The notes: a model not told the origin generated them from the sequence alone. A DNA stretch of 64,000 nt from Selaginella moellendorffii (GCF_000143415.4 NW_003314307.1:11369-75368); one strand, 5' to 3'; positions 170-53,844 are shown, counted from the first letter of the stretch. Numbers and translations are program-made.

Positions 170-2930
170 TGTAAGCAACTAAATTTTTTTTCTACTTTAA
201 TCATTTAACCCACTTTTGACCATTTGGAGGAGTTTCACTCACAACCTTCATAAGTCTTATTCCTAACTTGGGGATATGCTCACTTCGTGAATGGCATTTA
301 TGCCACTCAGCCTTTGCACTTGGTCTAAGTGCTTTATATGTTCGATCCCACGACAGACATTTAATGGTACCATTGATATATCAACTCGTTACACTAAGGC
401 TATAGCCATTTATTTTTGTCTCGTGGGTAATCCAAGACCATCCATACTATACTCTCATCTCCCAAAAATTAGGCCATCTATCCATGAGCATCCCATTACC
501 ACACATTAGCATCCTTACAATGCCCAGAGACATAGAGAATAGCATTCCCTAATATCCCTTCTTTAGTCCCCACTAATCCCTTTCTATCCATTGTCGTGAT
601 CGGCAACACTGCCACTAGGTCAGGGTCCGAAAACTGATCACTTAGTCCTATTGACCTCAGGGACTTTCAAACTTTATATCGGGTCCATCTTGGATCCATC
701 TCAGAATCCATCTTGGACTCCATCTCAGGTCCATCTTGGGTCCATATCAGCTCTATCTTAGACTCCATCTCAGACTCTGTCTTAGGTCCATCTTGGACTC
801 CTCTCTTTATCGGATTTAGATATACCAAGCTCTCACTCTAAGTAATCTAACCGTGCATCATGACTCCGGGGCATCCTTCATTTGGTGGTGTGCCCAACCC
901 AATCTCCTTACTGAAAGTCTATGACCATCAAAAATGAGTATCCTCATATTTAGTAAGTTGGGATTCGAACCCAACCTCCATATATGCATTTATGAATGGC
1001 ATCATCTAGGATACTACACTAATTTTGCACAATCCCATGAACCATTTACACGTGTCTTTCTAGGTATCAACCTACCTAAAGTTGTCTTTGGGAACATTGA
1101 AGGGACTTTATCCCTTAGCTTGTTAAGGCCTCTCCTTTTATAAGCTTTTTAATTGCTATATAATTTCATATGGATAATTCCATACTTTAGACTTTTTAAG
1201 GTATGAATTATCTAGCTTTTGGATTTTGCTAATCTGACGATCTATAAAGTCCTACTTTTAAGGTGTCAGCTTGCTAAAATACAACTTTTTATATTCATGT
1301 CCTACTCATAAAGACCATCTTTTGCAAATGTTACACCGATACTTGATTAATTTTTGTTCCCTGTAGACTACTTTTGCCCTTTAGGACTATCCATCTAAAT
1401 GATGAGAATGCTGACTCATCCTCTAAGTATATTCCCAATTCCTTGGGTTGTTTTAGCATTTATTAAAAGTAGCTCCGGCTACCTTTTTAAGGATGTGTCC
1501 TCATTCATATTCAATCTCCCATGGTCATTAATACTAGTCTCAAATTCATGAGCACCAGCCTCAATTATATGAGGATAATGTTGTGACTCTTTTATTGTCT
1601 TAAAGTCTCTCTTTCCTATGATCCTAACTATAGTTGTTTATCACAACCACATTAGCCGTCAAATGCTCATCTGGATCACATCTTCAACTCTCTAAGGATA
1701 ACCTTATACTATTCCAAAGATTCTAAAGTTGTTAACAAATTGGCCCCTTTTTATCCACTATATTACCAACATATTCACTTATAAACTAAGATGGAGAGTC
1801 ATGCCCTTTTGACATGCTACTCCTCCAGGATAGGCCCACTCTTAGGACCTTTCAATGCCAAGACAAGTGGTGATATACTTAACCACCAATAAGAGTCGGA
1901 TTAAGGAATAGCTCCGGTACCAAATTGTAAGTGACAAAGTTTTCCATTCTACTTTAGTCCCTTAACCACACCTTTGACCATTTGGAAGAGTCTCACTCAC
2001 AACCTCTATAAGTTCTATTCCAAAGTTGGGGACTTGATAGCCCCGAGAATGGCATCTATACCACTCAACTTTTGCACTAAGTCCAAATGCGACACATGTC
2101 TGATCTCATGACCCAAAGATACCATTGACATATCAGCCTATTACACTAAGGCCATACCCATTCACCTTTGTCACACTGATGATCCAACACTACATATATC
2201 ATAGTCCCGCCTCTCAAAGACTAGGCCATTCGTCCATGAGTGATGATCCCAAATCCACTCCTTAGCATCTTTAAGATGCCCATAGATAGGGGAATAGCCT
2301 TCTCAAATATCACTTTTTCAATCCCTAGCAAGTCCTTTTCCATCCACGGCCGTGTTTGCCAACACTATCACTAAGTCAAAGGCTCAACCACTACAACCCA
2401 TTGACCTCTGGGACTTCCTTGCCACATGATCGCATCCTTAGTCACCACACAAGAGGACTATTGCTCTTCCTTTCTTTAGTCTAGGACTCTACGACAACAT
2501 TTGAAAACACTATAGCCTTATGTGAGCTTCATGGTTACTTTCCCTATATTTTGCCTTTGGGTGCCCTACCCATGTGTCTAGAGCGAGGTTCTTATAAGCC
2601 ACACTAAGTATCCAAATAGGTAGTGCCACCCACACTTAGATTGGGAGCATTGACCATCCAATCCCCCAAGGGAGCTAGAGCCGGCTCTTGAACACTTTAC
2701 CAAGCTACCCTTTTTGTCTATCCATATTCATTCTAGCCTTGGACTCTTCAGTGATTATATCACCACCCAACACGTGGGTATAGCCTTCCTTGGTGACACT
2801 GGCCTTTCCTAGCCAAATTGGCTCCACTAGAATCCTCCCCCTACTATACTTTAGAAGCTCATCAAACCCCCCAAGATTTGGGAGACGAATACTTTGGGTT
2901 TTCACCCTTGGACTTGGACTCAAACTTGAA
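170..2930 (-). mobile_element. Degenerate fragments of a non-coding LTR element (LARD-like 'family L'): LTR remnant 170-~800, deleted internal part ~800-1925, 5' LTR part 1926-~2930
   Basis: Reverse complement matches the LTRs and internal region at 25767-41108. The LTR end TTACA at 1926 is followed on the minus strand by a PBS-like ATTTGGTACCGGAGC. Confidence 0.75.
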
Positions 2931-3034
2931 TACAGACAAAGGCTAACAAAGGATTAGTGGCCACTTAGGAAGTCATAAAGGCAAGGATCCGTGCAACTTA
3001 TGTTCCTCCAAATGCCACTCTACACCTAAGAGAT

Positions 3035-4562
3035 TGTAAGACACAAACCCCTAAGCCCCAAAGTGGAGCCAAAAGGGTGCCACATGGTAGTGGCCGAAGT
3101 AAAAGCCAAATAAGCGTAACACGTTTGGACTAAAAGCTTTGACTTCAAAGGTCGAGAGTAGAAGTGGAACTCCTAATGAAATGCTCGAGGAACAAACACA
3201 AAGCGAGCAATAAGTGAGTCTCTTAAAAAGGGGCACAAAAAGACCAACACATGACACGTGGAGGAGTCCAAGATGGACCTGAGATGGAGTCTGAGATGGA
3301 GTCCAAGGTGGACCTGAGATGGAGTCCGAGATGGAGTTCGTGATGGACCCGAGATAGAGTCCGAGATGGAGTCAAACAAGCGTAACACGTTTGGACTAAA
3401 AGTGAAAGCTAAACAAGCATAACACGTTTGGACTAAAAGCTTCGACTTCAAAGGTCGAGAGCGGGAGTAGAACTCCCAACGAAAGGCTTGAGGAACAAGC
3501 ACGAAGTGAGCAATAAGAGAGTCTCTAGAAAAGGGACACAAGAGGACTAACACATGAGACATGGAAGTGTCCGAGATGGAGTCCGAGAAGGAGTCCGAGA
3601 TGGACCCAAGATGGAGTCCAAGGTGGACCCGAGATGGAGTCCGAGATGGAGTTTAAGATGGACCCGAGATGGAGTTTGAGATGGAGTTCGAGATGGACCC
3701 GAAATGGAGTCCGAGATGGACCCAAGATGGAGTCCAAGGGAGACCCGAGATGGAGTTTGAGATGGACCCGAGATGGACCCGAGATGGAGTTGGAGTGGAC
3801 CTGAGATGGACCCTAGATGGACCCGAGATGGAGTCCAAGATGGAACCGAGACCGAGACTGAGACCGAGTCCAAGTTTGAGTCTGAATACTAATACAGGCT
3901 GTTGGATGAAAGCCCAAAGCAATCGTCCCCCAGTGGGGGTGGGGGGGTGCTGCAGGGGGTTCCAAAAGTATAGTAGGGAGAGTGTGGGGGTTGGAGCCTA
4001 ACAGAGCCAATTTGGCTAGGAAAGGCCAGTTTGGCCTAGGAAGGTAGGGGTTGGGTGATGAGCTAACCACTGGGAAGTCTAAGACTAAAGTGAATACGGA
4101 CCGACAAGCGGGGTAGCTTGGTGAAGTGTTCAAGAACTAGCTCTAGTTCCCCCGGGAGATCGAATGGTCGATGCTCCCAGTCCAAGCGTGGGTGGCACTA
4201 CCTACTTAAATACCTGGTGTGGCTCAATGGAACCTTGCTCTAATCCCATGGCTAGAGCACCCAAAGGTGGGAGGCGGGGAGAGCACCTATGAGGCTCGCA
4301 TAGGGCCATGGTGTTCTAAAATGTTGTCCCAAAGTCCCAGACTGTGGAAAGGAAGAGGAGTAGTTCTCTAGTGTGGCGACCAAGGATACAGTCAACGACC
4401 AAGGATACCAAATGCAAAGGTTGAGTGGCATGGATGCCATTCTCAAGGCTAGCAAGCCTCAAGTCCTGAATTGGACTTATGAAAGTTGTGAATGAGACTC
4501 TTCTAAGTGGCCAGAGGGGTAGTTAAGTGACTAAAGTAAAATGGAAAAATTAACCACTTTCA
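3035..4562 (+). mobile_element. Solo LTR of family L (1528 bp) inserted in the decayed gag
   Basis: TGTAAGAC...CTTTCA termini. Perfect 5-bp TSD GAGAT at 3030-3034 and 4563-4567. The gag reading (LHLRD|ELSRLKQ) resumes across it. Confidence 0.9.
3265..3880. repeat. 11/12-bp tandem repeat array (GAGATGGAGTCC / GAGATGGACCC) inside the family L LTR
   Basis: Directly visible. Similar arrays at ~685-800 (minus), ~39890-40125 and ~42745-43040. Confidence 0.9.
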
Positions 4563-4652
4563 GAGATGAGTTGAGTAGGTTGAAGCAGATAAGAACCATT
4601 CAAGAGTATGTGAATAAGTTTATGGCAAAGAGGATCCTTGTTATAGACATGA

Positions 4653-5247
4653 TGTAAGCTCTTGAGTTTGGACTTCTCGGGAGGTCATCCAGCCCAGTAC
4701 TATTCAACCCCAAGGACGCTTAACTTCAAGTATCCCAAGACCCTAAACCGATTGGAAAAAGGGGTGCACTCTTGTTCATGGGCCCTTTCCCTCTATATTT
4801 GAACTTTTATGGATCGTCTCTCGAGTCGTTCCCTTTGGTTGCTTACAATCCACCACGCTTCCGTGCAAGTTCACACCCTCGTGAATGGAAGCTAAGAGCT
4901 ACAGCTCTCCCGAGAGCCCCACTCTCTTGACACCCTACCCCTCGGGTCGAGCCCAGTGGGAGCAAACTGGACCAGCCAGATGTCAATCAACATGTGGTGT
5001 GATTCCCCTAGCCAACCAATAGAGTTAGACTCGAGACCTCTCTGATACCAAATGTAAGCTCCTGAATTTGGACTTCCCAAGAGGTCACCCAGCCCAGTAT
5101 TATTCAAACCCAAGGACACTTAACCCAAAATATCCTAAGACCCTTAACCGATTGGAAAAGGGGGTGCATTCTTGTTCATGGGCCCTTTCCCTCTATATTT
5201 GAACCCCTATGGATCGTCTCTCGAGTTGTTCCCTTTGGTTGCTTACA
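4653..5247 (-). mobile_element. Complete Cassandra-type TRIM: LTRs 4653-4847 and 5053-5247 (195 bp each), 205-bp internal region
   Basis: TGTAAG...CTTACA termini, PBS TGGTATCAGAG, PPT GCGTGGTGGAT, TSD CATGA/CATGG, 5S rRNA-like segment in each LTR. The LTRs differ at several sites, so this is an older insertion. Confidence 0.92.
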
Positions 5248-8162
5248 CATGGGTGACATGGATGTGTTCCATAACTTTATATTAGGCTTATAGAGTTAGG
5301 CTCAAGGCAAGGTGATACATTGAAACCCAACGAAGTATTGGATGTAGCTATTAAGGTGCATTTCAATAATAACCTATGAAAAAAAGAACATAAGGGGGTT
5401 GGGATCCACATTCAGCAAATGAGACAAAGTAAGAGGGATATATGGCAAAGGGAAATTCAAGAAAAGTTTCTCTAAGAGTGAATCCCCAAACAAGGCTAGA
5501 GTCAATATAGCCATTAAGTTTGGTGAAGTCCAAACTGAGGTATGTGATCTAGTTCCTAGCTGAAAGTAACTCATTAACTATGACATTTATTACCCTTCCG
5601 AGGGAAGATTAGAGATAGCTTTATTAAAATCTTTATTGACACAAATGCTTCAGATAATTTTGTGGTTACAGATATAGTCTGACAAGCCTGACTAATAGTG
5701 CAACTGTTGGGTGAACCAAGGACTATAAAGTTTATTCAAGGTAACTAAAGCACCAATGAGGTACTTTGACAAACAAGAGTCAAAGTAGAGATATAGAAAG
5801 TGGATATGGATTTCACCATATTAGACATGGCAGGATATTACATGATCTTTGAGATGGATTAATTTAATTAATTTGTGGTAGCCTTACATAGAAAAAGTAG
5901 GAACTTTGTGGTATTGACAAATGCTTGAAGAGAACAATTCAAGATGGATGCCCAAGATTTAAAGGTAGGGAAATGTAAGGCCAAAAACTCCTGCTTGAAC
6001 CCGGTGTTTATGAGAAGATAACTCACAAAAGGAACCAAGGCAACATTTTCATGCTTACTCTCAATGGGGAGTGAGAAAAATGTGAAAATAAAGGAAATAC
6101 CTTTAGTGATATAGCGGGAGTTAAACCAATTTCGAGATACTATGTTGGAGGAGTTACCCCTTACACCACCAATAGAATATAAGATTGAGCTAGTCAAAAG
6201 TGCTAATATAATGGTTTGTCACCCCTATTTGTTGAACAAAATAGAACTCAAGGAGCTTAACCATTAATTTGAGGAGTTGGTAGATAAAAGGTATATTAGG
6301 TTGAGCAAGTCATTGTATGGGGCACTGGTGTTATTTGTGGAAAAGAAAGATAGCTTTATGCATATGTGTATAGACTACCAGTTGCTCAACAAGTATACAA
6401 AGAAGAACAAGTACTTATTCCCAAAGATTGAAAATTTGTTTGATAGGTTGGGAAATGCAAAATACTTCTCAAGGATTAACCTAAGCTCAGGATATTACTA
6501 AATCAATATAGTAAAGGAAGATGTTTAGAAAATAACCTATGGGATAAGGTATGGAAGTTTTGAGTTTTTAGTGATGCCCTTTGGGTTGTGTAATGTGTTA
6601 GCAATGTTCTCGGCACTAATGAACCACATCTTTGTACCCCATTTGGATCATTTTATGGTCATTTATATTAATAACATCCCGATTTATAGTGAGATGCTAA
6701 AGGACCATGCCAAACACTTGATGAAAGTGTTTGAAAAACTAAGGGAACACAAACTATATGGTAAAGAGAGCAAATATGACTTTGCTCAACAAAAGGTAAA
6801 GTTTCTCGGGCATATGGTGGGTAAGGATGGGCTTAAGGTGGAGCCTGAGAAGGTCCAAGGGATCCAGGAATGTGAACGACTATTGAATATACATGAGTTA
6901 AGAGTGTTCTTGGGGCTACGCAACCACTATTAAAAGTTTATCAAACACTATTCCAGAGTAACTCTACCTTTAACAAACCAAATGGGGAAGATGGTATGGA
7001 CAGCAGAATGCAAGATGGCATTTATCCACCTCAAAGGGAAATTGAGGAAGACTCCTATGTTGGCATTATTAGACTTTAGTAAAAATTTTGAGGTAAAAAG
7101 AGATGCTTCAAACTTTATGTTGGTGCAATTTTGAAACAAGATAACTAGCTAGTGGTATTCTTCTCAAAGAAGTTGGACAAGGCTCAGCGAAAGTAGCTTA
7201 ATTATGAATAGGAACTATTTGTAGTGGTCAAGGCACTCAAAAAGTGGCGACACTACCTTGGGAGGCACTTCAAAGTTTACACGGATAATGTGGCAACAAA
7301 AAACTTCTTGTCACAGCTTGGCTTGTGATGAAAATAGAGTTAATGGGCAAATGCTTTGGCTGAGTTTAATTGTGAGATTTTGTATAAACTTATAGGAAGA
7401 GCAACATCATAACAAATGCTCTAAGTTGAAAAGTAAGCTTGAAGTTGGTGATGTCCAGTGTAACAACAATCTTTTTGGATGATGTGCGGACAATGTATGA
7501 AAATGATAGTCTAACATAAGAAGTGTTACTAAGGAACCAAAAGGTGCGGGATGCTCACCAAAGAGGTGAGCCATCTACAAAAGAGAAAATAGGTTATATG
7601 GAACGCAATAGACTCATCTATTATAAACAAATGAGGGTGTATGTTCCACAAAAGGAACTAAGGAAGCTAGCCTTAGAAGAGTGTTATGACAAACCTCTTG
7701 CAGAACATGCGAAATGCCCAAGACGATAGGCTTACTCAAAATAAAGTATCACTGGCTAGATATAATTAAAGACGTCTAAGACAATGTAAAGACATGTCTA
7801 ACATGTCAATAGGTCAAAGCCATAAGTAAGGCTAGTGGGGGTTTATTATAAAGCCTTTCAATTCCAAATCATTTGTAAAAATATTTTACAATGGACTTCA
7901 TCACAAGACTCCTCCAAGTGAAACAATACTTAGGTGGTGGACTGATTTGGCACATTTCATACCCACCACAACAGAAGTGGATGCAGAAGGTGTGGCAAAG
8001 CTTTTCTTTGAAAAAATGGTTTAAGTGTGGGAAAGGCCAGAAAGAATTATCTTAGATTGAGATAAGTTTGATAGCTATAACACTTCTTGACAAATGGACA
8101 GACAAAAATGATGAATAGGCAGTTAGAGGATTATTTATGATGTTATGTCTCTAGAGACCAGA

Positions 8163-8356
8163 TGTAAGCAACCAAAGGGAACGACTTGAGAGACGATCCA
8201 TGGGGTTCAAATATAGAGGGAAAGGGCCCATGAATAAGAGTGCACCCCCTTTTCCAATCGGTTAAGGGTCTTGGGATATTTGGGGTTAAGCGTCCTTGGG
8301 TTTGAATAGTACTGGGCTGGGTGACCTCCCGGGAAGTCCAAACTCAGGAGCTTACA
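8163..8356 (+). repeat. Cassandra-type 5' LTR (194 bp)
   Basis: Identical by eye to 14212-14405 and homologous to 4653-4847, 5053-5247 and 37003-37197. Confidence 0.95.
8285..8339 (+). promoter_or_regulatory. 5S rRNA-derived Pol III internal control region (A box/IE/C box) in the Cassandra LTR; second copy at 14334-14388
   Basis: GTTAAGCGTCCTTGGGTTTGAATAGTACTGGGCTGGGTGACCTCCCGGGAAGTCC matches the remembered plant 5S segment GTTAAGCGTGCTTGGGCGAGAGTAGTACTAGGATGGGTGACCTCC(C/T)GGGAAGTCC at about 47/55 positions, ungapped. Confidence 0.9.
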
Positions 8357-8359
8357 ATT

Positions 8360-8372
8360 TGGTATCGGAGCC
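8360..8372 (+). promoter_or_regulatory. Primer binding site, tRNA-iMet type (TGGTATCGGAGCC); second PBS at 14009-14020
   Basis: 3 nt after the LTR end; one mismatch to the canonical TGGTATCAGAGCC. Confidence 0.92.
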
Positions 8373-8415
8373 TTTTCCTCAGTTCTAGCGAAGGATAGAG
8401 GCGGATTGCTGGGAG

Positions 8416-11400
8416 ATGGCAAGGGCAGGGCGTAAGCGAACCCAGGCGGAGACGGAACCTCCGCCAGAGCTGGAGCCTCCGGTCGAACAAGAGGCTATGG
8501 ATGAGGAATCCTTGCATGAGGAGGACTCCAGTGAGGAAACCTCCAAACAGGAGTCCGGTGGCGAGGTTCGGTCGTCCAAGGCTCGATTGGACGTGCTAGA
8601 AGGACAGTTGGCACAGACCAATGCCCTGCTGGAAACTCTCGTACGCAAGCAAAAGCGTGACGAGAGGCGGAAGAAAAAGAAAAAGACTGCGGATGCTGGC
8701 AGCGCAGAAGGTGCGGATCTTTCGGCCGGGACTGAGGCAAAACCAGACAAGGTCGAACAGACCGAAGTGGAATCAGTCCCTCAGGCAGTTCCCAAGTACA
8801 AACCAAAGCCCCCACCGGTCTTCAAGGGAGTGAATGACTATAAGGTGGTGGAGGATTGGTTTTACGATATGGAGGACTACTTCCGAGCGTTGCGGTTACC
8901 AAGCTCGGAGAAGGTCCCATGTGCAAAACCATACTTGGCAGATAATGCCAAGTCTTGGTGGAGAACAACGGAGGCCAACGAAGGACCGGTGGTCACTTGG
9001 GACATGATGAAGGCGAGGATCCGCGCAACATATGTTCCTCCGAATGCCACTCTACATCTGAGGGATGAACTGAGTAGGCTGAAACAGACAGGAACCATCC
9101 AGGAATATGTGAATGGGTTCATGGCAAAGAGGATACTTGTCACGGACATGGGGGATATGGATGCGTTCCATGCCTTCATATCAGGTTTGCAAACCTGGGC
9201 TCGCGGCGAGGTGATGAGGTGGAACCCGACCAACTACAAGGAAGCGTTGGATGCGGCCATCAAGGTGCATTTCAACGATAACCTGCGAAAGGGGAACACG
9301 ACGGGGTCGGGATCCACATTTAGCAAAGGGGCCAAACCAAGGGGAACGTATAGCAAGGGGAAATTCAAAAGGAGTTTCTCTAAGAATGAGTCCTCGGGGT
9401 TCCGGAAAGGCAAATCCGGTGGCCAGCGAGCGAGTACGTGGGGGAGTCAAGCGAAAAAGGACAAACCCACGGATAAGAAGGTCAAGTCGTATAGCAGCGT
9501 GGGAAACAACGTATGCTACAACTGCGGCGAAGCGGGACACTTCTCGAGGGAATGTCCCTACCCGAAGAAGGCCAGAGCCAATATGGCCATCAAGTCGGGT
9601 GAAGTCCAAATTGAGGTATGTGATCCAGTCCCTAACTCAAAGTTACTCATTACACGAGCAACTTTGGTAGAGAGTCGTTCGCGACATCTACTAGCCCTCC
9701 GAGGGAAGCTCGGAGGTAGCTTTGTTAAGATCCTTATTGACACGGGTGCTTCGGATAATTTTGTGGCTGCAGACATAGTCCGGCAAGCCGGACTAACGGT
9801 GCAGCGGCTAGGCGAACCAAGGACTATAGAGTTTGTTCAGGGTAGCCAAAGCACCGATGAGGTACTTCGACAAGCGAGAGTCGAAGTGGGGACATGGAAA
9901 GTGGACATGGATTTCACCGTCTTGGATATGGCGGGATTTGACGTGATCTTCGGAATGGATTGGTTTAATCGGTTCGTGGTAGCCCTGCATGGACAAGGTA
10001 GGAACCTTGTGGTATTGGCGAATGCCCAAGGAAGAAGATCTAGGGTGGAGGCCCAGGATCTAAAGGTAGGGCAAAGCAAGGCCAAAGAGTCATGCTTGAA
10101 CCTGGTGTCCACGAGAGGACAACTCACTAAAGGAACTAAGGCAGCCTTTTTGTGCTTACTCTCGGTGAAGAGTGACAAAAAGACAAGAACGGAAGAAGTG
10201 CCTTTAGTGATCCAGCGAGTGTTGGACCAATTCCAGGATACCATGCCGGAGGAGCTACCGGCGGGGTTGCCCCCCGCACGACCGATAGAACATAAGATTG
10301 AGCTTGTCGAGGGCGCTGAGGCGGTGGTTCGTCCCCCCTATCGTTTGAACGAAAAAGAACTCAAGGAGCTCAAGTGCCAACTAGAGGAGTTGGTGCGCAA
10401 AGGGTATGTTAGGTTGAGCAAGTCGCCGTATGGGGCGCCGGTATTATTTGTGAAAAAGAAAGATGGATCTATGCGCATGTGCATAGATTACCGGTTGCTC
10501 AACAAGTATACCAAGAAGAACAAGTACCCGTTGCCAAGGATTGAGGACCTGTTCGATAGGTTGGGAAAGGCAAAATACTTCTCGAGGATTGACCTAAGGT
10601 CAGGATACTACCAGATCAGGGTAGCCGAGGAAGATGTCGAGAAGACAACCTGTCGAACGAGGTATGGGAGCTTTGAGTTTTTGGTGATGCCCTTTGGGCT
10701 GTGCAATGCGCCGGCAACGTTTTCGGCGTTGATGAACCACGTCTTTGTACCCTATCTGGATCACTTTGTGGTCGTCTATATTGACGACATCCTGATCTAT
10801 AGCGAGACGCTAGAGGAGCATGCCGAACACTTGGCGAAGGTGTTTGAGAAACTAAGGGAACATAAACTGTATGCTAAAGAGAGCAAATGTGACTTTGCTC
10901 AGCAAGAGGTAAAGTTTCTCGGGCATGTGGTGGGCCAGGACGGGCTCAAGGTGGACCCGGAGAAGGTCCAAGCGATCCAGGAATGGGAGCGACCATCGAA
11001 TGTACATGAGTTGAGGGCGTTCTTGGGGCTATGCAACTACTATCGAAAGTTTATCAGACACTATTCGAGAGTAGCCCTGCCCTTAACGGATCAAACGGGA
11101 AAAGGGAAGATGGTATGGACAGCGCAATGCGAGGCGGCATTCGTCCACCTCAAAGGGAAGTTGAGGAAGGCTCCGGTGTTGGCATTACCGGACTTTGGTA
11201 AGGACTTTGAGGTAGACACGGATGCTTCGGACTTTGCGTTAGGCGCAGTTTTGAAGCAAGACAACCATCCAGTAGCGTTCTTCTCGAAGAAGCTGGACAA
11301 GGCTCAACGGAAGTGGCCTGCCCACGAGAAGGAATTGTTTGCGGTGGTCAAGGCGCTCAAGGAGTGGCGACACTACCTTGGGAGACACTTCAAGGTTTAC

Positions 11401-11742
11401 ACGGACAATGTGGCAACGAAACACTTCTTGTCACAACCCGACCTGAGAGGGAAACAAGGTCGGTGGGCCAATGCCTTGGCCGAGTTTGATTGCGAGATTC
11501 TGTACAAGCCTGGGAAGAGCAACATCGTGGCAGATGCGCTAAGTCGAAAAGCGAGCTTGAGGTTGGCGATCTCCAGCGCAACAGCAACCTTCTGGGACGA
11601 TGTGTGGACAGCATATGAGAACGATGGTCTAGCACAAGAAGTGTTGTTGAGGAATCTGGAGGCACGGGAAGCTCACCAGAGAGGTGAGCCGCCAACGGAA
11701 GAGAAAACGGGCTATACATGTATCGTTCGAGTATCGGGGTGA
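8416..11742 (+). CDS. Ty3/gypsy Gag-PR-RT-RNaseH polyprotein, integrase core deleted
   Basis: Zinc knuckle [14 protein letters not shown], protease [32 protein letters not shown]. The frame is broken at 11716 by a ~745-bp deletion relative to element B. Confidence 0.93.
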
Positions 11743-12453
11743 GTCCATGGGAAGTCATCAATGTGCGAGCTATTGAAGGTCCTGTGGAACTCGGCGTGGC
11801 CGAGTATCATGGAGAGTTACCCGCAGTGGAGGCATTCACGGCGGAAAGACTCAACATTTGGAATCTAGTGAGGGATTCCTTGGAACGGGCTCAACAAAGG
11901 CAAACCAAGTACGCGAACCTAAAGCGCCGTGACGTAGAGTTCCAAGCTGGGGAGAAGGTGTGGCTGAACACCAAGAACCTTAGGCTACCAAGTGGGATCA
12001 GCCGAAAGTTGACCGAAAGGTAAAAATGCATGTATTCCTGTAAATGAATTGATCTTGAGTTCCTTAAGCAGGTTTGCGGGGCCTTACGAGATTGAGGCAC
12101 GAATCGGTAAAGTGGCTTACCGACTCCGACTTCCTCGAGAGATGGGGAAGATGCACCCAGTGTTCCATGTGAACTTACTCAAGCCGTACTTTGAGGATCC
12201 GCTTCGCAAAGACCAAGTAAGACCTTTACCTGAGGTTATCCAAGGGGAAGAGGAATACGAAGTCGAGGCCATCCTCAATGCGCGCAAGAGCAAGCGACAA
12301 GGACGCGAGGTGAGAGAGTTCCATGTGAAGTGGAAAGGATTTCCACACTGCGAAGCAACATGGGAACCGGAGGAGAACCTAGCGAACGCGCGAGATCTAG
12401 TGGAGGAATTTCTGCAAGGCAGAACTCTATGTACTTATGCAAAGTTCAATTAA
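11726..12453 (+). pseudogene. Integrase C-terminus (GPY/F motif, interrupted by 52-nt intron 12020-12071) and classical chromodomain, orphaned by the deletion
   Basis: RKLTER|FAGPYEI joins after removing GT..CAG. Chromodomain YEVEAIL...VKWKGF...TWEPEENL. Confidence 0.88.
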
Positions 12454-12857
12454 AAATATCAATTTGCAAAGTTGAGCAAGTGGCATATGTTGGGACCCGA
12501 AGGCGCGCCAAAGGTGAGCTAATTAGCATGGGTTAGCTAGGTCGACCAGGCGTAGGGAGCTACGCCCGACTTCCTGCGGGGATGTCGAAACCGTAGACGT
12601 ATTCTACGGAGGTTGGGTTCGAGTCCCAACCCCCTAGTAAAGCAAGGCTGGGTTCAAGTCCCGACCCCATACTAGGGCGTGGTGAGGGGTGGAGTATAGG
12701 GACACCTATATTCCGTTGTCATGAGCTCTTGGCCGGGGAGGCTAACTTAGGCACACCGCTAAGTGGGGGGATGCCCCCGGAGACATGGTCAACAAGTCGT
12801 AGGATAAAAAAGAGACGTTCGATGTGGGCATCGAACTTCTTCTATGGGTGGTGGAGT

Positions 12858-14005
12858 TGTAAGGAACCAACTCGCCGAGGTGTCGTAGGCTAAGGGAACC
12901 CTGAAAGCATGACCAAAATGACAAAGAGTTCATCGGATGGGACCAAGTCAAAGATCGAGTCCAAGACCGACTCTAGGACCGAGTTCGAGATCGAGTCCGG
13001 AATCGAGTCCGAGACCGACTCGGGGACCGAGTTCGAGTCCGAGTTCGAGACCGAGTTCGAGACGGAGTCCGAGATCCGAAATCGGGTCCGAGACCGAGTC
13101 CGAAGTCGAGTCCGAGGTCGGGCCCGAGATCGGGTCCGAGATCGAGTCCGCGATCGAGTCCGAGACCGAATCCGAAGTCGGATCCGAAATCGGATCCGAG
13201 ATCGAGCCAGAGACTAAGTCCAAATACTAATACGGGTCAAGGGGTGAAAGCCCAAAGCGTGCGTCCCCCAGGGGGGGGGGGCTGCAGGGGGTTCCAAAAG
13301 TATAGTAGGGATAGTGAGGTCCAGGAACCAGTTTTGAAGGGACTCTCCAGTTGGGCTTCCAAACCGACTTGAGGTTGGGACTGGGACTAAGGGGCCTTGG
13401 GTGGGAGTGAGCATGGACTTGGCTGGTGCCGGAGGGGCCATCCAAGGAAGTGCTCAAGAGCAGCTCCCACTCCCGAAAGGGAAACCGATTGCGGTGCTCC
13501 CGGCTCATGTGGAGTGGTGCCCCACTTGAGTACCATGCGGCTCATTGGTCCTCGCCCTTCCAAGGGGCTTGGGCCTTCCTTCGGGATGGAAGTGGGGGGC
13601 GAGAGGTACCCATACCGGGCCGTTAGGCCACGGTGTTTCGCCCCGGCGTCCCGAAGCAAGTGTTGCACTCAAGACTTGGGATTTAGAGGGTCCCATGATC
13701 AAGTCTTGTGGTACCAAGGGATGTTAGGAACCTGGAAGCTTGGTGTGCTTGGCTGCTTGTGCTTGCGGGGAGTGTAGCCGAACCTTAAGTCCAGTCTAAC
13801 CCGGGGAGGGGGATTGGGAGTGATTTGGGAATCCGTGGAAGGATGGCTAACACTCCGTTGCTCGTGCAGTGAGTAGCTGAAACCAAGTAGGAGCTGGTAC
13901 CATAGGCGAGAACCTTGGCAAGGGAACTTGGCAAAAGCCAAGGCAGTGTTGGACGGATAGACGAGGTAAGCTGGCAAATTGGAAAGGAAAAATTTGTGGC
14001 TTACA
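12858..14005 (+). repeat. Chromovirus LTR (1148 bp) internal to the chimera
   Basis: TGTAAGGAACC...GGCTTACA. Preceded by PPT GGGTGGTGGAGT and followed by a PBS. Near-identical to the LTRs of element B. Confidence 0.95.
12945..13220. repeat. Degenerate hexamer array (CGAGTC/CGAGAT/CGAGAC) in the chromovirus LTR; copies at ~27825-28100 and ~34212-34490
   Basis: 6-bp periodicity visible; it generates low-complexity spurious ORFs. Confidence 0.88.
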
Positions 14006-14211
14006 ATTTGGTATCGGAGCGGTCTCGGGTCCGACTCTGTTGGTTGGCTAAGGGAATCACACCACATGTTGATTGACATCTGGCTGGTCCAGTTTGCTCC
14101 CGTTGGGCTCGACCCGAGGGGTAGGGTGTCAAGAGAGCGGGGCTCTCAGGAGAGCTGCGGCTCTCAGCTTCCGTTCACGAGGGCGTGAACTTGCAGGGAA
14201 GCGTGGTGGAT

Positions 14212-14405
14212 TGTAAGCAACCAAAGGGAACGACTTGAGAGACGATCCATGGGGTTCAAATATAGAGGGAAAGGGCCCATGAATAAGAGTGCACCCCCTT
14301 TTCCAATCGGTTAAGGGTCTTGGGATATTTGGGGTTAAGCGTCCTTGGGTTTGAATAGTACTGGGCTGGGTGACCTCCCGGGAAGTCCAAACTCAGGAGC
14401 TTACA
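14212..14405 (+). repeat. Cassandra-type 3' LTR (194 bp)
   Basis: Preceded by PPT GCGTGGTGGAT and followed by TSD CCAGA. Confidence 0.95.
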
Positions 14406-17400
14406 CCAGACTAATCAGGTAAATCATTTGGGACTTGCGGAAATGTGTTATAACAACTCACCACATTCAAGTATCGAGGTGAGTCCATAGGAAGTTATCA
14501 ATAGGCGAGATATTGAAGGTTTTGTGGAACTTGGTATGGTCAAGTATCATGAAGAGTTACTTGCAATAGAAGCTTTCACGGTAGAAAGACTCAACATTTG
14601 GAATTTAGTGAGGTATTCATTAGAACAAGCTTAACAAAGGCAAATTAAATATGCAAACCAAAAACACCAGGACGTGGAGTTCCAACTTGAGGAGAAGGTG
14701 TGGCTAATCCCAGATAAAATACACCAGCCACACCCTTAGAATGGTAACACTAAAGTTACTAAGTAGGATTAGTCAGATGTTGAGCCACATGTATTCTTGG
14801 AAATGAACTAATCTTGAGTTCTTTAAGAAGATTTGCAAGGCCTTATAGGATTAAGGCTCAAATGGTAAAGTGGTTTACCACCTTTGACTTCTTTGGGAGA
14901 TTGGGAAGATGCACCTTGTGTTCCATGTGAACTTACTAAAACCATACTTTGAGGATTTGCTTCACAAGGACTAAGTAAAACTTTTAGGTTATCCAAGGGG
15001 AAGAGGAATATGAGGTCAAGGCCATCCTCAATATACGCAAGAGCAAGTGACAAATATGGGTGTTCTATGTTAAGTGAAAAGGATTTCCACTCTGCAAAGT
15101 AACATGGGAATTGGAGAAGAACCTAGGAAACACACGAGATCTAGTGGAGGAATTTTTGCAAGGTAGAACTTTATGTACTTATCAAAACTCAATGAAAGTA
15201 TGTATTTGTGAAATTGAGCAATATCATATATTAGGACTTGAAGGTGTACCAAAGATAATCTAATTAGCATGAGTTAGCTAGGTCAACCAGGAGTATAGAG
15301 ATACACTTGACATCCCACGGGAATGTCAAATTCGTATATATATTCTACGAAGGTTGGGTTCGAGTCCCAACCCCCTAGTAAAGCAAAGTTGGGTTCCAGT
15401 CTCAACCCTATACTAGGGCGTGGTGAGATGATGTCACGAATGTGACTTTGGGTATCAAAAGTTACTTGTCAGCTAGTCCTTACGGACATTTTTTCCTTAC
15501 TACCACAACGGTAGAAGGTCAATATTGCTGGACTTTTATCAGTCTCCGCCTAAGCTAATTGAGAAATTGGTCTTCGCGTGTGCACTTGACCAGATAAGCA
15601 TAAGGACGGAATTCCTAAGTGCTATTAGTTAAACATACTTGACCTAGTTAGAGAAACTCATTTGTTGACTTGCACTTGCTAGTGTTGAGAACCCCCGCAA
15701 TATTGAGCTTGGTCCCTCAATATTAGCTAGATGATAGCTTACCGTGTTTGCCAAACACCCTTGCTATCATTCCCTTTGTGTTAGTCTCATTTCAGTTCCA
15801 AATACTATTTATGGAAAGTGTCTAGATTTGCTCATTTAGCATATCTACAGAATGTAGAGATTGTCTTAAACACAATGGTGTTTGTCTTGTGTCCAAATTC
15901 ACAATCTAGAAACATACCATATTTAGTAAGTTTTGAGCTTGTCCCAAAGACTAACTCCTAGTACTAAGGGAGGCTTGGGGTGAAAGCCCAAAGTGTGTGT
16001 TCCTCAATGGGGGGGGCTGTGGGGGGTTCCAAATGTATAGTAGGGATAGAGGTAGGTTGGGCATGGGCGACCAACCTGAGGCATAGTCTACCTTCTGCTT
16101 GTGTGCTTGTCCTTGTTTTGCATTCGGCTTGGGTTTAAGCTCGAGCTCCACACCATGCTAGCTGGTGGAGTACCCATATCCTTGCATTAGGCCATCGGTA
16201 TGCTGAAATAGCACTAGACTCTATTTGGCTCCGTTTTACGTGTTAGTCTTGGCATTAGGATGTTGGATGCTTTAGGACTGTTCCAAGTCACTCCATGCTC
16301 CTGTCTCTTTGCTCCTTGGGCTATATATTCGGGAGTCATTCCGTGTTCAAGTGCCATTGCTCCTTGGCTCCATGCTTGGGAGTTTGGTACCGTTCCTTCT
16401 TTTAGTGGCCTAAGGCCCTAAAACTTGAGTTCCAGACCATTGTCCTTTGGACATGTGGCATGTGACACGTGGCATCTGTCATGTGGCACAAAGAGGGTTT
16501 AGGTTCTACTTCGTGGTTATCCTTTGGTAAATCACCATAGGATAAAGGGGTCAAAACCACATGCGCTACATTTGGTATCAGAGGGTGAGTCTCGGCAAGT
16601 ACTATCCAATGAGATTGGGCAACTAGTCTCATTGCATACACAGAAATGAAAACGATGATCCAAATGGGTACATGTTTAGGTGCTGAGACTTCGCATTGGT
16701 TCCTTGGGTATTAATTTGGTTACCTTTTTTATACTATAATAATGTGAGCTTGCTCTTGGGCTCATAAGATGAATGTAAGATGTTCTGTTCACACGAGTTT
16801 GTGCTTGGGCTCGTGAGTGAGGCACATTAGCAACTCGAGGTTACACTTTGAGTTGGTAGGATTAATGTTAGCCTATCGGTGGTTCCATAAGTTGTTCCTT
16901 GTACCATGGGTGAAAGTTAACTTCCTCTGGGTTTGCTAAGAGTCACAATTAGGCTAATCTGTAGTTGTTTAGCACGACACTAATGGATCCTTCCTAAGCA
17001 TGATTACAAGTGGATCAACCAAGACTGTAGGGCTTAGTCTATTGGTTCAAGTAGTCATTGCCGTGCTCTCTCATAAATGTTTCTTGGATTGGACTGAAAA
17101 CAATGCGAAAGCAAGCTTGAGGTTTAGCTAAAGATGAGACTGAAAAGAGAGTCATCAGAGATGAAGGATCAAAGACATAAATCATTTTACTCTTCTTGGA
17201 GAGATGATTAGCAATGGTGTGTTAACTCATTACTCGTTTCACGGTATGCAACCAAGAGTCCCTATCTTGGTGCATATTGGAAATGATGGTTTTACAAGTG
17301 GTGAGTTATAACAGTGAAGCATTAAACCATTTTGTCTAAGCTTGCTATTGAAGACTTGGATTGCAATGCTCAATTTTTTTTTTAGAGAATCTTGCTATTG

Positions 17401-17816
17401 TTCCTTGAGTAGCTTGGTGTTGGATTAGTGTTGAGCTTAGTTGTATGAGCTTGTCTGTATTGTGAACAAAATTTAGTAGTGTTAAGTGTTGTAAATCTCT
17501 ATTGGTGGGGTGTGGCATTTATGTTGCATTTTGTCGAATTGAGTTAACATTTGATACTTAGATAAATCTTTGAAGTAGTGATATGGGTATTACTTATTGT
17601 GTTGCTCAATTGAAGATCAAGTCATTGTGATTTTATATCATATCCATATGATAATGAGCAATGTGTTTGCGAAGTTGTTTGGTTAAACAATGATCAACCC
17701 CAAAGTGGTTGATGGTGAAGGTAGTATACTTGCACGAAGTAGCATTGTAGTAGTTTTGACTGGATTCTTGATGGTGGTCTATTATGCTAAATTTAAGTTG
17801 ATTCCTTGTTCCTTGA

Positions 17817-17978
17817 TGTAACGCACCTTATCTCTCTCCCCTTAAGCCAACTAAGAAAAGGCCAATTGCTTGATGAGAGAGCCCTTAGTGGTTATTTTAT
17901 CCCCATTTATCCCTCAAGGTTCCAAGAATCCACAGTGACAGTATATCCAAATTTCATCCCATAATCACATGCGCTACA
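17817..17978 (+). mobile_element. Short (162 bp) LTR-like unit abutting the assembly gap
   Basis: TGTAACGCA...TGCGCTACA inverted termini; the 3' end CACATGCGCTACA is identical to the family T LTR end. Confidence 0.55.
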
Positions 17979-18078
17979 NNNNNNNNNNNNNNNNNNNNNN
18001 NNNNNNNNNNNNNNNNNNNNNNNNNNNNNNNNNNNNNNNNNNNNNNNNNNNNNNNNNNNNNNNNNNNNNNNNNNNNNN
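17979..18078. other. Assembly gap (100 N)
   Basis: Run of N. Confidence 1.
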
Positions 18079-21000
18079 AGAGATGTCAATGTCCTCATTG
18101 ACAATTGACTAATAACCCCTACTGAGCCAAGGGGTATTAGCACCTTCATTTTCGCACTGAATCTACCAATCCTTCCATTGTGTAGACTAGCTATTCCATA
18201 TGAGGCAGTCTCATGGTGGATACCTTTAAGTGATGAAGAGTTTTTCCTTAGGCTTGATTTTTCATGTCATTTTTCTTGTTAGTGTTTGGGCTTCATATTG
18301 GATCTTGAAGGTGATTGAAGAAGAGTGTTAGTGCAATGTGAATATCCGAAGATATGGTTTTCATGATTAGGCCTTGGATGTTCATTTTGCATTTTGCGGA
18401 TGTCAGTGTTGGATATCAGAAATATGGGCATGATGTTCGATGCTTAAGCATACTATGAGTCTCAAGAATTTATGTTGAAGTGAACCTATGTGAAGTTGTA
18501 AGTAGGAAGAAGTTGGTTGAAGTCTTGAAAGTTTGCATTGAAAGTCATTCTTTCTCTAGGATGGAAAATTTTCCATAAATTTTCTTAGACTTTTCCAATG
18601 GTTTATCTATTGATTACTTTGCCCAAAAACCATTCTGTTTTCGTAAGCTAGTATAAACTAGTGAAGGGGTTAGAATTAACTTCAATTAGCTTAGACCTTA
18701 GTAGGTAGTTTGTATGATGCGGCTCAAAAAAGATGCTAACTTTTGGGGCTAAGGCAATTGAGTTGGATAGAGTTTGGAGTTAGTGTCAAAAAGTGGTCAT
18801 TGTGCTTTTCTAATAAAGGTGACCCTTGTGCTTTTCTTTTAGCATTGTGCTAGGTGGCAGGTTACACCTTGCATTTTGTTAAGACTCTATAAGAGTAGTG
18901 AGCTCTTATTGATCTTGACTTGATCTTGGTGGCCCTGTGCCTTGGCTGAGGATAATGATGTCCAACTTAGTTGTTTAAGGTTAAGATGTTGATACATATA
19001 TTATTGCTTTGTCTAAGTGGAGGTTGTGTACCGATATGAGTCTATCTCATGGTCTTTACTTTGGTTTCAACTAAGTGTTGATCATGCATAGCTAGCCTCT
19101 TCAAAAGATGCTTAGAGCTATTGGCTAAATGTGTTAGTGAGCTTATTGCAATTGAGTTGGATTCGAGTAGTTCTTTAGTTCATGCTTGTCCATGAACCTT
19201 TATCTTATACTTGAGATATTATATTCATATTAGATAAGCATATGACCTGATGATATGAGTTTAGAGTTTGGGTTTTGTGAAGGCAAGTTGAAGAGTGATT
19301 ATTAGTTGTTTTGCGAACTAATGATTACTTGTAGACTTTGTCAAGGACTGTTGACACTTCACTCAATGAAGATTTATTAGTGATGGGTTTGCTTTCCCAA
19401 ATGGTGCTGTAGAGGATCGTGTCGTTAAACTTACATGGGTTTTCCATGTTAACATGTCGACTCTACCTTTGTCAATATCATTTGGTTGCATTTAGTCTAT
19501 GGTGTTAGATTTCATTGAGTCTTGGATGTGGTGAATCACTCCTTGATAATGTGTTATCTATTGCTGAGTATTGTTGAAAGTTTAGTCTTAGATACTGAGT
19601 AAGGTATCTTTGACTTTGGTTAACTTGGTTGTTAAAGAGCTTTGAGTGGTGATTTACTTTTGCTTTCTTTTAGCTTTGTTTTGGTGTTGATGGCCTTGAA
19701 GTGATGCTCTGTCATTGACATTGTTGATGTTGAAACTCGAGTGAAATGAGATGTTTCTTTGTAGGATTGATATTGAGTTTCATTAATCTTAATGAAGACA
19801 GTGTTGATAATTTGTTATGGCTTTGTGTTGTTGGCATTTATGCATTTGCTAGTTAGCAACTATGTTGGCGTTGAAATGAGCTGAGTGGTAGGTTTGAGTT
19901 AGTTGCGTTCTAGACAAGATTATTTAGTAATGGTTGAGCTTTGGCTTTTCCTTGAAAAGTGATTCAGTCATGGACTATGCTAGCTTTACGAAATGAAGAG
20001 TTAGTGATTCATATTGAAATGTTTGAATCCTTATTAGATTTGAGTTGAAATATATTGATCATTGATAATTCTTCTTGTGCTTGTTATAAAGTGAGTTATG
20101 TTTTACTATAGATGAATTCATGGCGGATCATTTAGTGATCACTTGTTAAGCATAGTTCCATTGAGCTTAGCTTTTGGATTGATGCAGATATGCTCTTCAT
20201 TAGCTTTGGCATTATGAAGTTTGGTTTATGGATGTGCTAAGGAGGATATTGTGGGTTATACTATAATTTCTTCTTTAGTATTAAAGTTAGTTCATGCAAG
20301 ACTTGTGATCATTATTAAGCAAGACTTGGCTATAGACTTTTTCAAGTTTTTGGTTCTTTGAGTTTTATGCTCATTGTTCCATTTGTTAGGAGTTATTGGG
20401 AAAGGCATTTTTGATTATTAACTTCGATGTTAAAGTTAGCTTTTGCATTTAGCAATCATTGATGATGATTTAGAGGGTTTTGCTTGATTATTATTGTTAT
20501 AGAATGATTTATTGTTCTTCGGGATGGTGGATTCGTTCTTCGACAATAACTATGCATTTTTTTATTGATAGGATGATTGATAGTCTTTCATGATAATTAA
20601 TTATTTTCTTTGATGACTTATGGCTTTTCACAATACCACATGTTCTTTGTGATTTGCTCTAGATTGGTCTCTTGGGTTTGAGACATTAATAAGATATTGC
20701 TAAGACTTGCTTGAGTAACTCTGGTTCCTTGGTATTGTTAACCGGGATTTATTCAGATTGGCTAATGTGATAGTTAGCATGAATCAGTGTTTGTTGGTTT
20801 TACCACATTCATTTTGTTTTGTTGATTATTGCTTGAGTTAGTTCTGATAGATTAGGATGGTATTTCCTTTAGGTGATACAGTCGTGAACATTGTGCTTGT
20901 CAGTTAATGATACTTTGTGTTTTTTGAGTTATCTTAGATAGGTAGTTTGGCATACTGTCTATAATCTTCAGTAGTTAAGTTTTCTTATTGAGTTTACTTG

Positions 21001-33000: not shown

Positions 33001-34575
33001 GAGGGACTGATTCCACTTCGGTCTGTTCGACCTTGTCTGGTTTTGCCTCAGTCCCTGCCGAAGGGTCCGCACCTTCTGCGCTGCCAGCATCCGCAGTCTT
33101 TCGCTTTTTCTTCCGCTTCTCGTCACGCTTTAACTTGCGTACGAGAGTCTCCAGCAGGGCATTGGTCTGTGCCAACTGTCCTTCTAGCACGTCCAATCGA
33201 GCCTTGGACGACCGAACCTCGCCACCGGACTCTTGTTTGGAAGTTTCCTCACTGGAGTCCTCCTCATGCAAGGATTCCTCATCCATAGCCTCTTGTTCAA
33301 CTGGAGGCTCCAGCTCCGGCGGAGGTTCCGTCTCCGCCTGGGTTCGCTTACGCCCTGCCCTTGCCATCTCCCAGCAATCCGCCTCTATCCTTCGCTAGAA
33401 CTGAGATAAAGGCTCCGATACCAAATTGTAAGCCACAAATTTTTCCTTTCCAATTTGCCAGCTTACCTCGCCTATCCGTCCAACACCGCCTTGGCTTTTA
33501 CTAAGTTCCCTTGCCAAGGTTCTCGCCTATGGTACCAGCTCCTACTTGGTCTCAGCTACTCACTGCACGAGCAACGGAGTGTTAGCCATCCATCCACGGA
33601 TTCCCAAATCACTCCCAATCCCCCTCCCCGGGTTAGACTGGACTTAAGGTTCGGCTACACTCCCCGCAAGCACAAGCAGCCAAGCACACCAAGCTTCCAG
33701 GTTCCTAACATCCTTTGGTACCACAAGACTTGATCATGGGACCCTCTAAATCCCAAGTCTTGAGTGCAACACTTGCTTCGGGACGCCGGGGCGAAACACC
33801 GTGGCCTAGCGGCCCGGTATGGGTACCCCTCGCCCCCCCACTTCCATCCCGAAGGAAGGCCCAAGCCCCTAGGCAGGGCGAGGACCAATGAGCCGCATGG
33901 TACTCAAGTGGGGCACCACTCCACATGAGCCGGGAGCACCGCAATCGGTTTCCCTTTCGGGAGTGGGAGCTGCTCTTGAGCACTTCCTTGGATGGCCCCT
34001 CCGGCACCAGCCAAGTCCATGCTCACTCCCACCCAAGGCCCCTTAGTCCCAGTCCCAACCTCAAGTCGGTTTGGAAGCCCAACTGGAGAGTCCCTTCAAA
34101 ACTGGTTCCTGGACCTCACTATCCCTACTATACTTTTGGAACCCCCTGCAGCCCCCCCCCCCTGGGGGACGCACGCTTTGGGCTTTCACCCCTTGACCCG
34201 TATTAGTATTTGGACTTAGTCTCTGGCTCGATCTCGGATCCGATTTCGGATCCGACTTCGGATTCGGGTTCGGACTCGATCGCGGACTCGATCTCGGACC
34301 CGATCTCGGGCCCGACCTCGGACTCGATTTCGGACTCGGTCTCGGACCCGATTTCGGATCTCGGACTCCGTCTCGAACTCGGTCTCGAACTCGGACTCGA
34401 ACTCGGTCCCCGAGTCGGTCTTGGACTCGATTCCGGACCCTATCTCGAACTCGGTCCTAGAGTCGGTCTTGGACTCGATCTTTGACTTGGTCCCATCCGA
34501 TGAACTCTTTGTCATTTTGGTCATGCTTTCGGGGTTCCCTTAGCCTACGACACCTCGGCGAGTTGGTTCCTTACA
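27040..34575 (-). mobile_element. Intact Ty3/gypsy chromovirus (element B), LTRs 27040-28188 and 33427-34575 (1149 bp each)
   Basis: TG..CA termini, perfect TSD TGGGC (27035-27039, 34576-34580), PBS TGGTATCGGAGCC, PPT GGGTGGTGGAGT. The LTRs look identical. Confidence 0.97.
28595..33367 (-). CDS. Gag-PR-RT-RH-INT-chromodomain polyprotein; predicted exons 33367-29494, 29446-29029, 28976-28595 (1557 aa spliced)
   Basis: All domains are present (INT HHCC: H..H..CPTC; MDF / SDRD / QTER). Removing the 47-nt and 52-nt GT-AG segments restores HPQT-DGQTER and KLTQR-FAGPY in one frame. Confidence 0.9.
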
Positions 34576-44027: not shown

Positions 44028-44029
44028 TC

Positions 44030-53717: not shown

Positions 53718-53844
53718 GCGGTCTGTCTGAGGAGGCGCAAAACAAACTAATGACAAGTTATCAATATATCAAGTTGATGAGGTGTCATACTAAAATATTT
53801 GAATTTTAGACACCCACCGCACCAAGTCTCTAGGGTTCTTGCCA

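Follow-up and report, generated by a model that had tools for sequence, protein, structure and literature searches.

A 64,000-nucleotide window of the Selaginella moellendorffii genome (GL377611.1:11369-75368, assembly GCA_000143415.2), which is the whole stretch of DNA analysed here, contains at positions 8163-14405 (GL377611.1:19531-25773; 6243 bp) a unit in which a Cassandra-like TRIM (a miniature retrotransposon with terminal repeats) is fused with a chromovirus. The order of its parts is Cassandra-like long terminal repeat (LTR), primer-binding site (PBS), chromovirus internal region, polypurine tract (PPT), chromovirus LTR, PBS, Cassandra-like internal region, PPT and Cassandra-like LTR, with a target-site duplication (TSD) around the whole. 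The unit is probably a heterodimeric cDNA that was formed by PBS-guided strand transfer between two co-packaged RNAs and integrated by means of its Cassandra ends. The features on which this reading depends are the following.

8158-8162, no strand: left copy of the TSD, CCAGA; a single CCAGA stands at the homologous site of an uninterrupted paralogue
8163-8356, plus strand: Cassandra-like 5' LTR, 194 nt, TGTAAGC...GCTTACA, 100% identical to 14212-14405
8266-8353, plus strand: partial 5S rRNA-like segment in the LTR (Rfam 5S_rRNA, 34.4 bits, E 1.3e-5)
8350-8371, plus strand: first copy of a 22-mer, at the switch from Cassandra-like to chromovirus sequence, with the PBS at 8360-8371
8372-12857, plus strand: chromovirus (Ty3/gypsy) internal region, 97% identical to the full-length copy at 27040-34575 (minus strand)
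8416-12453, plus strand: broken gag-pol, recognised from Pfam domains and from comparison with the full-length copy
12846-12857, plus strand: chromovirus PPT GGGTGGTGGAGT, preceding the central LTR
12858-14005, plus strand: complete central chromovirus LTR, 1148 nt, TGTAAGG...GCTTACA, 98.3% identical to the LTRs of the full-length copy
13999-14020, plus strand: second copy of the 22-mer, at the switch from chromovirus to Cassandra-like sequence, with the PBS at 14009-14020
14021-14211, plus strand: Cassandra-like non-coding internal region with a PPT at its end (14196-14211), 92% identical to that of an ordinary TRIM in the window
14212-14405, plus strand: Cassandra-like 3' LTR, recognised by its identity with the 5' LTR
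14406-14410, no strand: right copy of the TSD, CCAGA, with the same paralogue comparison as the left copy

The outer LTRs are identical at 194 of 194 positions and are flanked directly by CCAGA on both sides, in agreement with an initial annotation of the locus that had proposed this structure. As a stand-in for the empty site, the left and right flanks, which belong to an older host chromovirus, were each aligned separately to an uninterrupted young chromovirus copy, on which they overlap by exactly 5 nt at a single CCAGA; this overlap shows that the Cassandra ends delimit a precise, integrase-type insertion. The chromovirus part has one LTR and no TSD of its own, and both changes of family fall within the 22-mer GCTTACAATTTGGTATCGGAGC, which is made up of the last 7 nt of an LTR, an ATT spacer and a 12-nt PBS. 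This 22-mer occurs three times in the window, at 8350, at 13999 and on the minus strand at 33412, where it forms the 5' LTR end and PBS of the ordinary full-length chromovirus copy. Alignment across the first junction gives Cassandra LTR-like sequence to the left of 8350 and chromovirus leader-like sequence to the right of 8371, and across the second junction chromovirus LTR-like sequence to the left of 13999 and Cassandra internal-like sequence to the right of 14020 (the Cassandra-like internal region begins at 14006 if spacer and PBS are included and at 14021 beyond the 22-mer). These alignments bear out what had been annotated about the single chromovirus LTR, the lacking TSD and the position of both switches, and with it the statement that this is not ordinary nesting: nesting followed by deletion was rejected on these same three grounds. 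Unequal crossing-over between LTRs was rejected on the identity of the outer LTRs, the one common TSD and the non-chimeric central LTR, and switching between R regions on the absence of the chimeric LTRs that it predicts. The central LTR differs from the LTR of its family at 19 positions, and because these are evenly spread it is not chimeric; its match to both LTRs of the full-length copy marks it as a genuine LTR.

An artefact of the Sanger whole-genome assembly is hardly credible as the source of this structure. The unit lies in a dense nest of repeats in a scaffolded assembly, with a 100-N gap at 17979-18078, 3.6 kb to its right; but about 500 bases are enough to cover each junction and its unique flanks, an overlap assembler would not be misled by as little as 22 nt of identity, one 22-mer is unlikely to have given rise to two reciprocal false joins, both host flanks abut perfectly in the paralogue, and the chromovirus part is a distinct copy that is 2-3% diverged and has a deletion of its own.

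An origin by reverse transcription is favoured because both switches fall in the same 22-mer, which is a landmark of strand transfer, and the product resembles a reverse-transcription intermediate in that the central LTR has its own PPT before it and a PBS after it. In the proposed mechanism, the RNA of the Cassandra-like TRIM and the RNA of an already defective, integrase-deleted chromovirus would enter one particle, the proteins of which would come from other chromovirus copies. Since both RNAs would have the same LTR end, spacer and tRNA-iMet PBS, a DNA end that stops in the PBS could anneal to the other partner. In one variant, which is the model of the initial annotation, both plus-strand strong-stop DNAs would move to the minus strand of the other partner, and the resulting dimeric circle would be opened by strand displacement at the Cassandra LTR; in a second variant, the Cassandra minus strand, once the PBS had been copied, would switch to the PBS of the chromovirus RNA, and ordinary steps would follow. 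Both variants are predicted to give the observed order, and the sequence does not separate them. Integrase would then insert the product by its two identical Cassandra ends into the older chromovirus, with duplication of the 5-bp CCAGA. Packaging size should be no obstacle, because the normal chromovirus, at 7536 bp, is longer than the unit, at 6243 bp. Of the annotation's proposal of co-packaging and a swap at the PBS, reverse transcription at the PBS thus stands as the most economical account; co-packaging, the strand-transfer step and integration in one piece are what we infer from it.

Several observations weigh against this origin. The fused architecture is seen at one locus only, and neither a second copy nor the reciprocal product was encountered among the searches made: a protein search with the 1108-aa open reading frame (ORF) found no further copy (the best match is 43% identical), the first 200 aa of gag, searched against proteins, had no match, exact-protein look-ups of three ORFs of the window found none, a metagenome scan for the 5S part plus PBS gave 0 matches, a metagenome scan for GCTTACA plus PBS gave 100 loci with 0 related to either family, and the 8.4 kb of the scaffold outside the window contain no copy. 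Retroviral plus-strand transfer is reported to be almost always intramolecular. Comparison of the Cassandra internal region with the chromovirus leader found no similarity beyond the PBS, and no common packaging signal is visible in them. The other complete Cassandra-like element of the window (4653-5247, minus strand) has a TT spacer after its LTR end and two differences in its PBS, which makes three differences from the 22-mer; three in 22 is approximately what would be expected at 8% divergence, and this point is neutral, neither for nor against the model. Finally, an identical sequence results if a one-LTR circle recombines, by one crossover, with a Cassandra already in place, at its PBS.

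The history to which the last point belongs is capture after integration, in which a Cassandra-like TRIM inserted at CCAGA and later recombined, at the 22 nt of identity, with a one-LTR circle of the chromovirus or with another PBS-ended cDNA intermediate, either by single crossover or by homology-guided repair of a break in the PBS. Such a history gives the exact order of parts, the duplicated 22-mers, the identical outer LTRs and the same TSD; the chromovirus family was active recently, and active LTR retrotransposons commonly give rise to one-LTR circles as by-products. Capture is nevertheless rated below the heterodimer, and as unlikely, because 22 nt is very short for homologous recombination in plants; in addition, a rare circle must meet one particular target of 595 bp, and nothing in the sequence demands a history in two steps. 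When the unit was said to have integrated as one piece, this was therefore right for the outer ends, which are those of a single integrase-type insertion, but later recombination with a one-LTR circle is indistinguishable from it here. Template switching during chromosomal replication is a highly improbable source of the same product. In that scheme a fork stalled in the Cassandra PBS would have copied a chromosomal chromovirus, starting at the chromovirus PBS and running on until the 3' LTR was complete, and would then have returned by microhomology. Formally the outcome is the same, with the 22-mer serving the first switch and GCTTACA the return; but the return must hit the last 7 nt of an LTR by chance, and both landmarks are accounted for directly by reverse transcription.

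For the chromovirus half of the fused unit, a relative in the same window allows comparison.

27040-34575, minus strand: ordinary two-LTR chromovirus, 7536 bp, of the same family as the chromovirus part of the fused unit

The LTRs of this copy are identical at 1149 of 1149 positions, its TSD is GCCCA, and in its gag-pol (28595-33367) the integrase core is present, along with two frame changes. Its Pfam domains follow the order gag, zinc knuckle, protease, reverse transcriptase, RNase H, integrase zinc finger, integrase core, SH3 and chromodomain (Chromo, E 1.5e-16), and because this order is complete and ends with a chromodomain at the C-terminus of integrase, the family is classified from its sequence as a chromovirus. 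The combination of two LTRs, PBS, PPT and a 5-bp TSD is found in this copy and is absent from the chromovirus part of the unit. The copy sits in another repeat, a paralogue of which at 1204-2845 shows a 5-nt overlap at the insertion site. A tandem array of 12-nt units (about 24 units) lies inside the chromovirus LTR (approximately 12936-13225, 27830-28110 and 34220-34500) and gives spurious ORFs of about 100 aa.

The gag-pol of the fused unit retains gag, zinc knuckle, protease, reverse transcriptase, RNase H, the C-terminal SH3 domain of integrase and the chromodomain, and lacks the zinc finger and catalytic core of integrase through one internal deletion of approximately 0.74 kb, as judged against both the full-length copy and the homologue P0001. 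Two frame changes in the C-terminal part of integrase are common to the fused and full-length copies, and no stops occur within the aligned gag-pol segments of either. All of the domains that had been named for the unit are thus present, but the ellipsis in that list hides the missing integrase zinc finger and core, and the description of a Cassandra element "carrying gag-pol" is too strong for a unit with these losses and two frame changes, which depended on proteins acting in trans. On the same grounds, the fused unit is considered not autonomous, both halves having relied on proteins made elsewhere; elements called putative autonomous encode all transposition domains, and the unit does not. 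Nor is a transcript of the whole unit by RNA polymerase (pol) III or II likely, because an entire LTR, with signals of its own, lies inside the unit, together with eight runs of at least four T, of which the interior of the ordinary Cassandra has none. If the published pol III model for Cassandra RNA, as it is summarised in PMC10886601, holds, these runs would stop pol III. With no integrase core, a complete internal LTR and eight T runs, propagation is improbable, and the unit is most likely a dead-end by-product and not a new autonomous element. The suggestion that it marks a route by which a TRIM captures coding capacity is doubtful for the same internal LTR and T runs.

The TRIM half is represented in the window by two further loci.

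4653-5247, minus strand: ordinary Cassandra-like TRIM of 595 bp, in which LTRs of 195 nt enclose an internal region of 206 nt
37003-37197, minus strand: lone Cassandra-like LTR, 92% identical

The outer LTR of the unit is 92-94% identical to the three other LTR copies in the window, and the two LTRs of the ordinary TRIM are 89% identical to each other. The ordinary TRIM contains no ORF of at least 150 aa and has no tblastn match to chromovirus proteins; it has the small size, short LTRs and non-coding interior of Cassandra. Against Rfam 5S_rRNA, which has a gathering score of 38, the LTR of the fused unit scores 34.4 bits, a partial match below that threshold with a 36-position gap, and the ordinary TRIM scores 26.6 bits (E 0.0033), also below it and with a 36-position gap. 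A box A-like motif begins at 8284 and a box C-like motif at 8314, with a spacing of exactly 18 nt and with one mismatch each to the degenerate Cassandra motifs of PMC7215508. In the Cassandra-like LTR, a TTTT run occurs only once (8250-8253 and 14299-14302), some 30 nt upstream of the box A-like motif. The PBS of the unit matches the published tRNA-iMet PBS TGGTATCAGAGC at 11 of 12 positions and starts 3 nt past the LTR and 6 nt past the 5S-like part, the PPT of the Cassandra part ends in GTGGTGGAT, and the TSD of 5 bp (CCAGA) likewise has the form found in Cassandra. The label Cassandra-like is used because the TRIM is a small non-coding LTR element with a partial 5S match and with the boxes and PBS so spaced; its 5S character is only partial. 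The lone LTR has unmatched flanks (ATAGA and ATAAG) and may be the product of recombination between two elements rather than of one insertion.

Compared with the Cassandra TRIMs described by Kalendar et al. (2008, 2020) and Maiwald et al. (2024), the elements of the window are likewise short and non-coding, with box A-like and box C-like motifs spaced by 18 nt, a tRNA-iMet PBS that follows the 5S-like part after a few bases as in ferns, a PPT and a 5-bp TSD; they differ in the partial 5S match below the Rfam gathering score and in the lycophyte host. In the literature searched, Cassandra was found in ferns and angiosperms only, and the elements reported for Selaginella were TRIMs and Helenus, which is of the tRNA type, with none of the 5S type among the TRIMs. 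A Cassandra-like TRIM family with a partial 5S segment is present in this lycophyte at 8163-8356, 4653-5247 (minus strand) and 37003-37197 (minus strand), and the locus would place a TRIM of the 5S type in that lineage.

The age of the ordinary TRIM bears on the possibility that the order of events was the reverse, the fused form being an ancestral coding "master" from which ordinary Cassandra arose by deletion between the 22-mers. Removal of the stretch between the 22-mers does leave exactly an ordinary Cassandra, and there is a precedent in rice, in which a 25-bp sequence containing the PBS is duplicated (PMC4717578). However, the ordinary Cassandra of the window is old, its own LTRs being only 89% identical, whereas a normal two-LTR chromovirus whose own LTRs do not differ matches the chromovirus part of the unit at 97-98% identity; the TRIM thus predates the fusion. 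The integrase core is, moreover, missing from the supposed master, and a descent in this direction is very improbable.

The fused unit bears on which element supplies proteins to the TRIM. As had been annotated, Cassandra is without a firmly identified helper, and papers up to 2024 agree: its autonomous partners are called unknown (PMC7215508), and there is "no indication" of its helper family (PMC10886601). The Cassandra-like and chromovirus LTRs agree at 12 of 13 positions at their 5' ends and at 7 of 7 at their 3' ends, the ATT spacer and G-variant PBS are identical between the two parts, the PPTs of both families end in GTGGTGGA, and the sequences upstream of the PPTs are collinear and similar. 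The older host chromovirus has differing LTR ends (TGTCAC...CTACA), and the LTR family of a solo LTR at 3036-4561 has 10 of 13 positions in common at the 5' end and not the 3' end; the match between TRIM and chromovirus is only partly specific. No tRNA genes, sought as a check on the G-variant PBS, were found in the window. In yeast Ty1, the PBS is inherited from the template rather than from the tRNA.

Of the LTR sequence, the outer and central repeats have in common only their ends and about 40 nt that form a core. A short core in the U3 of the Cassandra-like LTR, GGGGTTC.AAA.TATAG.AGGGA.AG, recurs in all chromovirus LTR families of the window, which hints that the TRIM LTR may have descended from a chromovirus LTR. 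The elements common to all chromovirus LTR families of the window are AAAGCCCAAAG, a G-run and GGGTTCCAAA.GTATAGTAGGGA, located at 13241-13320, 15977-16050, 3887-3987, 40130-40236 and 43050-43118, with a shortened form at 8199-8235 in the Cassandra-like LTR; this core may be a promoter core.

Recent activity of both families is indicated by LTR differences of 0/1149 in the full-length chromovirus and 0/194 in the unit. On the basis of the matching LTR ends, spacer, PBS and PPT, and of the identical LTR pairs in both families, there is moderate support for this chromovirus family as the helper of the TRIM. The initial annotation had called the structure physical evidence for the helper; the common cis-signals are indeed those expected of a helper and its parasite, but the support that they give is moderate and falls short of proof. 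That the unit is the fossil of a heterodimeric cDNA and also records the packaging and reverse transcription of TRIM RNA together with RNA of this one chromovirus family is a tentative proposal, somewhat less probable than its alternatives taken together. If it is true, this would be the first named helper lineage for a Cassandra-type element, in a lycophyte. Cassandra elements are widespread in vascular plants, and the 2020 and 2024 papers still call their partners unknown; the locus ties a Cassandra-like TRIM physically to one chromovirus family and offers a first sequence-level lead which, being one locus, is no proof. The question of the helper can now be asked by survey, through co-variation of the signals of Cassandra and chromovirus subfamilies in Selaginella genomes.

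Complexes with three LTRs, a 5-bp TSD and nearly identical outer LTRs have been attributed to template switching of two co-packaged RNAs within a single round of reverse transcription (Sabot & Schulman 2007, PMC1950507), and with the rice element OsajLTRA10 (Gao et al. 2016, PMC4717578) they mean that the novelty first claimed for the unit was overstated. The unit has the characters of such complexes, namely an internal LTR, two internal regions, a 5-bp TSD around the whole and highly similar outer LTRs. The cases in PMC1950507 involve partners of the same family (Angela, Squiq, Opie) and a switch proposed between R regions, which gives related or chimeric LTRs; in contrast, the partners here are a TRIM and a chromovirus, joined at the PBS and not through R-region homology, with no chimeric LTR and with a central LTR unrelated to the outer LTRs save for the ends and the short core. 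The unit would thus widen the concept of template-switch complexes from relatives within one family to the pairing, through the PBS, of a parasite with its presumed helper. In the complexes ascribed to unequal crossing-over (Devos et al. 2002, as presented in PMC1950507), two internal regions with one common LTR are likewise found, but these are characterized there by no common TSD, unrelated outer LTRs and a chimeric central LTR, and none of the three applies to the unit.

In OsajLTRA10, TRIM LTRs surround a Ty1/copia coding region that is reported to be fully coding, and a 25-bp sequence that includes the LTR end and the PBS is found twice, once on either side of the extra segment; the TRIM OsajRetroS10 equals OsajLTRA10 minus that segment, and OsajLTRA10 was taken as the ancestor of the TRIM (PMC4717578). 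The likeness to the unit lies in TRIM LTRs around a coding region with a duplicated PBS segment (the 22-mer at 8350 and 13999). OsajLTRA10 differs in being a copia element, in being fully coding and in its interpretation as a TRIM ancestor, and the paper does not say whether its second 25-mer is preceded by an internal LTR. The unit offers a second reading of the OsajLTRA10 structure: if the heterodimer is real, PBS-guided intermolecular transfer would be a general route, also behind the rice "autonomous TRIM" with its duplicated PBS segments. Identity of the unit with the Selaginella pair SmoRetroS4/SmoLTRA4 was rejected because the sizes differ, SmoLTRA4 having 4373 bp and 104-bp LTRs (PMC4717578). 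Chimeras of sugar beet TRIMs with donated LTRs have been ascribed to template switching (PMC13570524), and LTR swapping in non-autonomous elements has been described in soybean (Du et al. 2010). As far as the available accounts of these soybean and sugar beet chimeras extend, they resemble the unit in the exchange of LTRs or internal regions between non-autonomous elements and other families, and differ from it in that they are replacements resulting in two-LTR elements or TRIMs with donated LTRs, whereas the unit keeps both internal regions and a heterologous central LTR.

The surroundings of the unit are themselves composed of LTR retrotransposons in the left 45 kb of the window, and the element that contains the unit is the following.

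2912-16570, plus strand: host of the unit, an older chromovirus with approximately 78% nucleotide identity to the young family and a 3' LTR at 15432-16570

This host is interrupted by the solo LTR at 3036-4561, by the ordinary Cassandra at 4653-5247 and by the fused unit at 8163-14405. The solo LTR (TGTAAGAC...CTTTCA) belongs to another family, lies within the host gag with the TSD GAGAT, and has relatives at approximately 39650-41110 and 42530-44030. The 3' LTR of the host is followed directly by TT and a tRNA-iMet PBS (16573). Past this PBS, about 5 kb that include the N gap are free of ORFs; a clean PPT follows, and after it a similar LTR of which only the first 98 nt are present (21734-21831, 85% identical, cut off). 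By its sequence, 15432-21831 looks like a second complex, in which coding and non-coding internal regions have one common LTR.

Cellular genes occupy the right part of the window, where 51879-64000 is 100% identical over 12,122 bases to the S. moellendorffii locus of the protein SELMODRAFT_420361; this match places the window on GL377611.1. ORFs with CFAP65-like Ig domains and a BIG/GNOM-type Sec7 ARF-GEF lie on the plus strand at 49269-59552. In the public annotation, CFAP65-like, Sec7 and CNNM domains are placed in one model of 3645 aa, which looks like a merged gene model. An AP2/ERF ORF on the minus strand at 61931-62614 is 97% identical to SELMODRAFT_420361.

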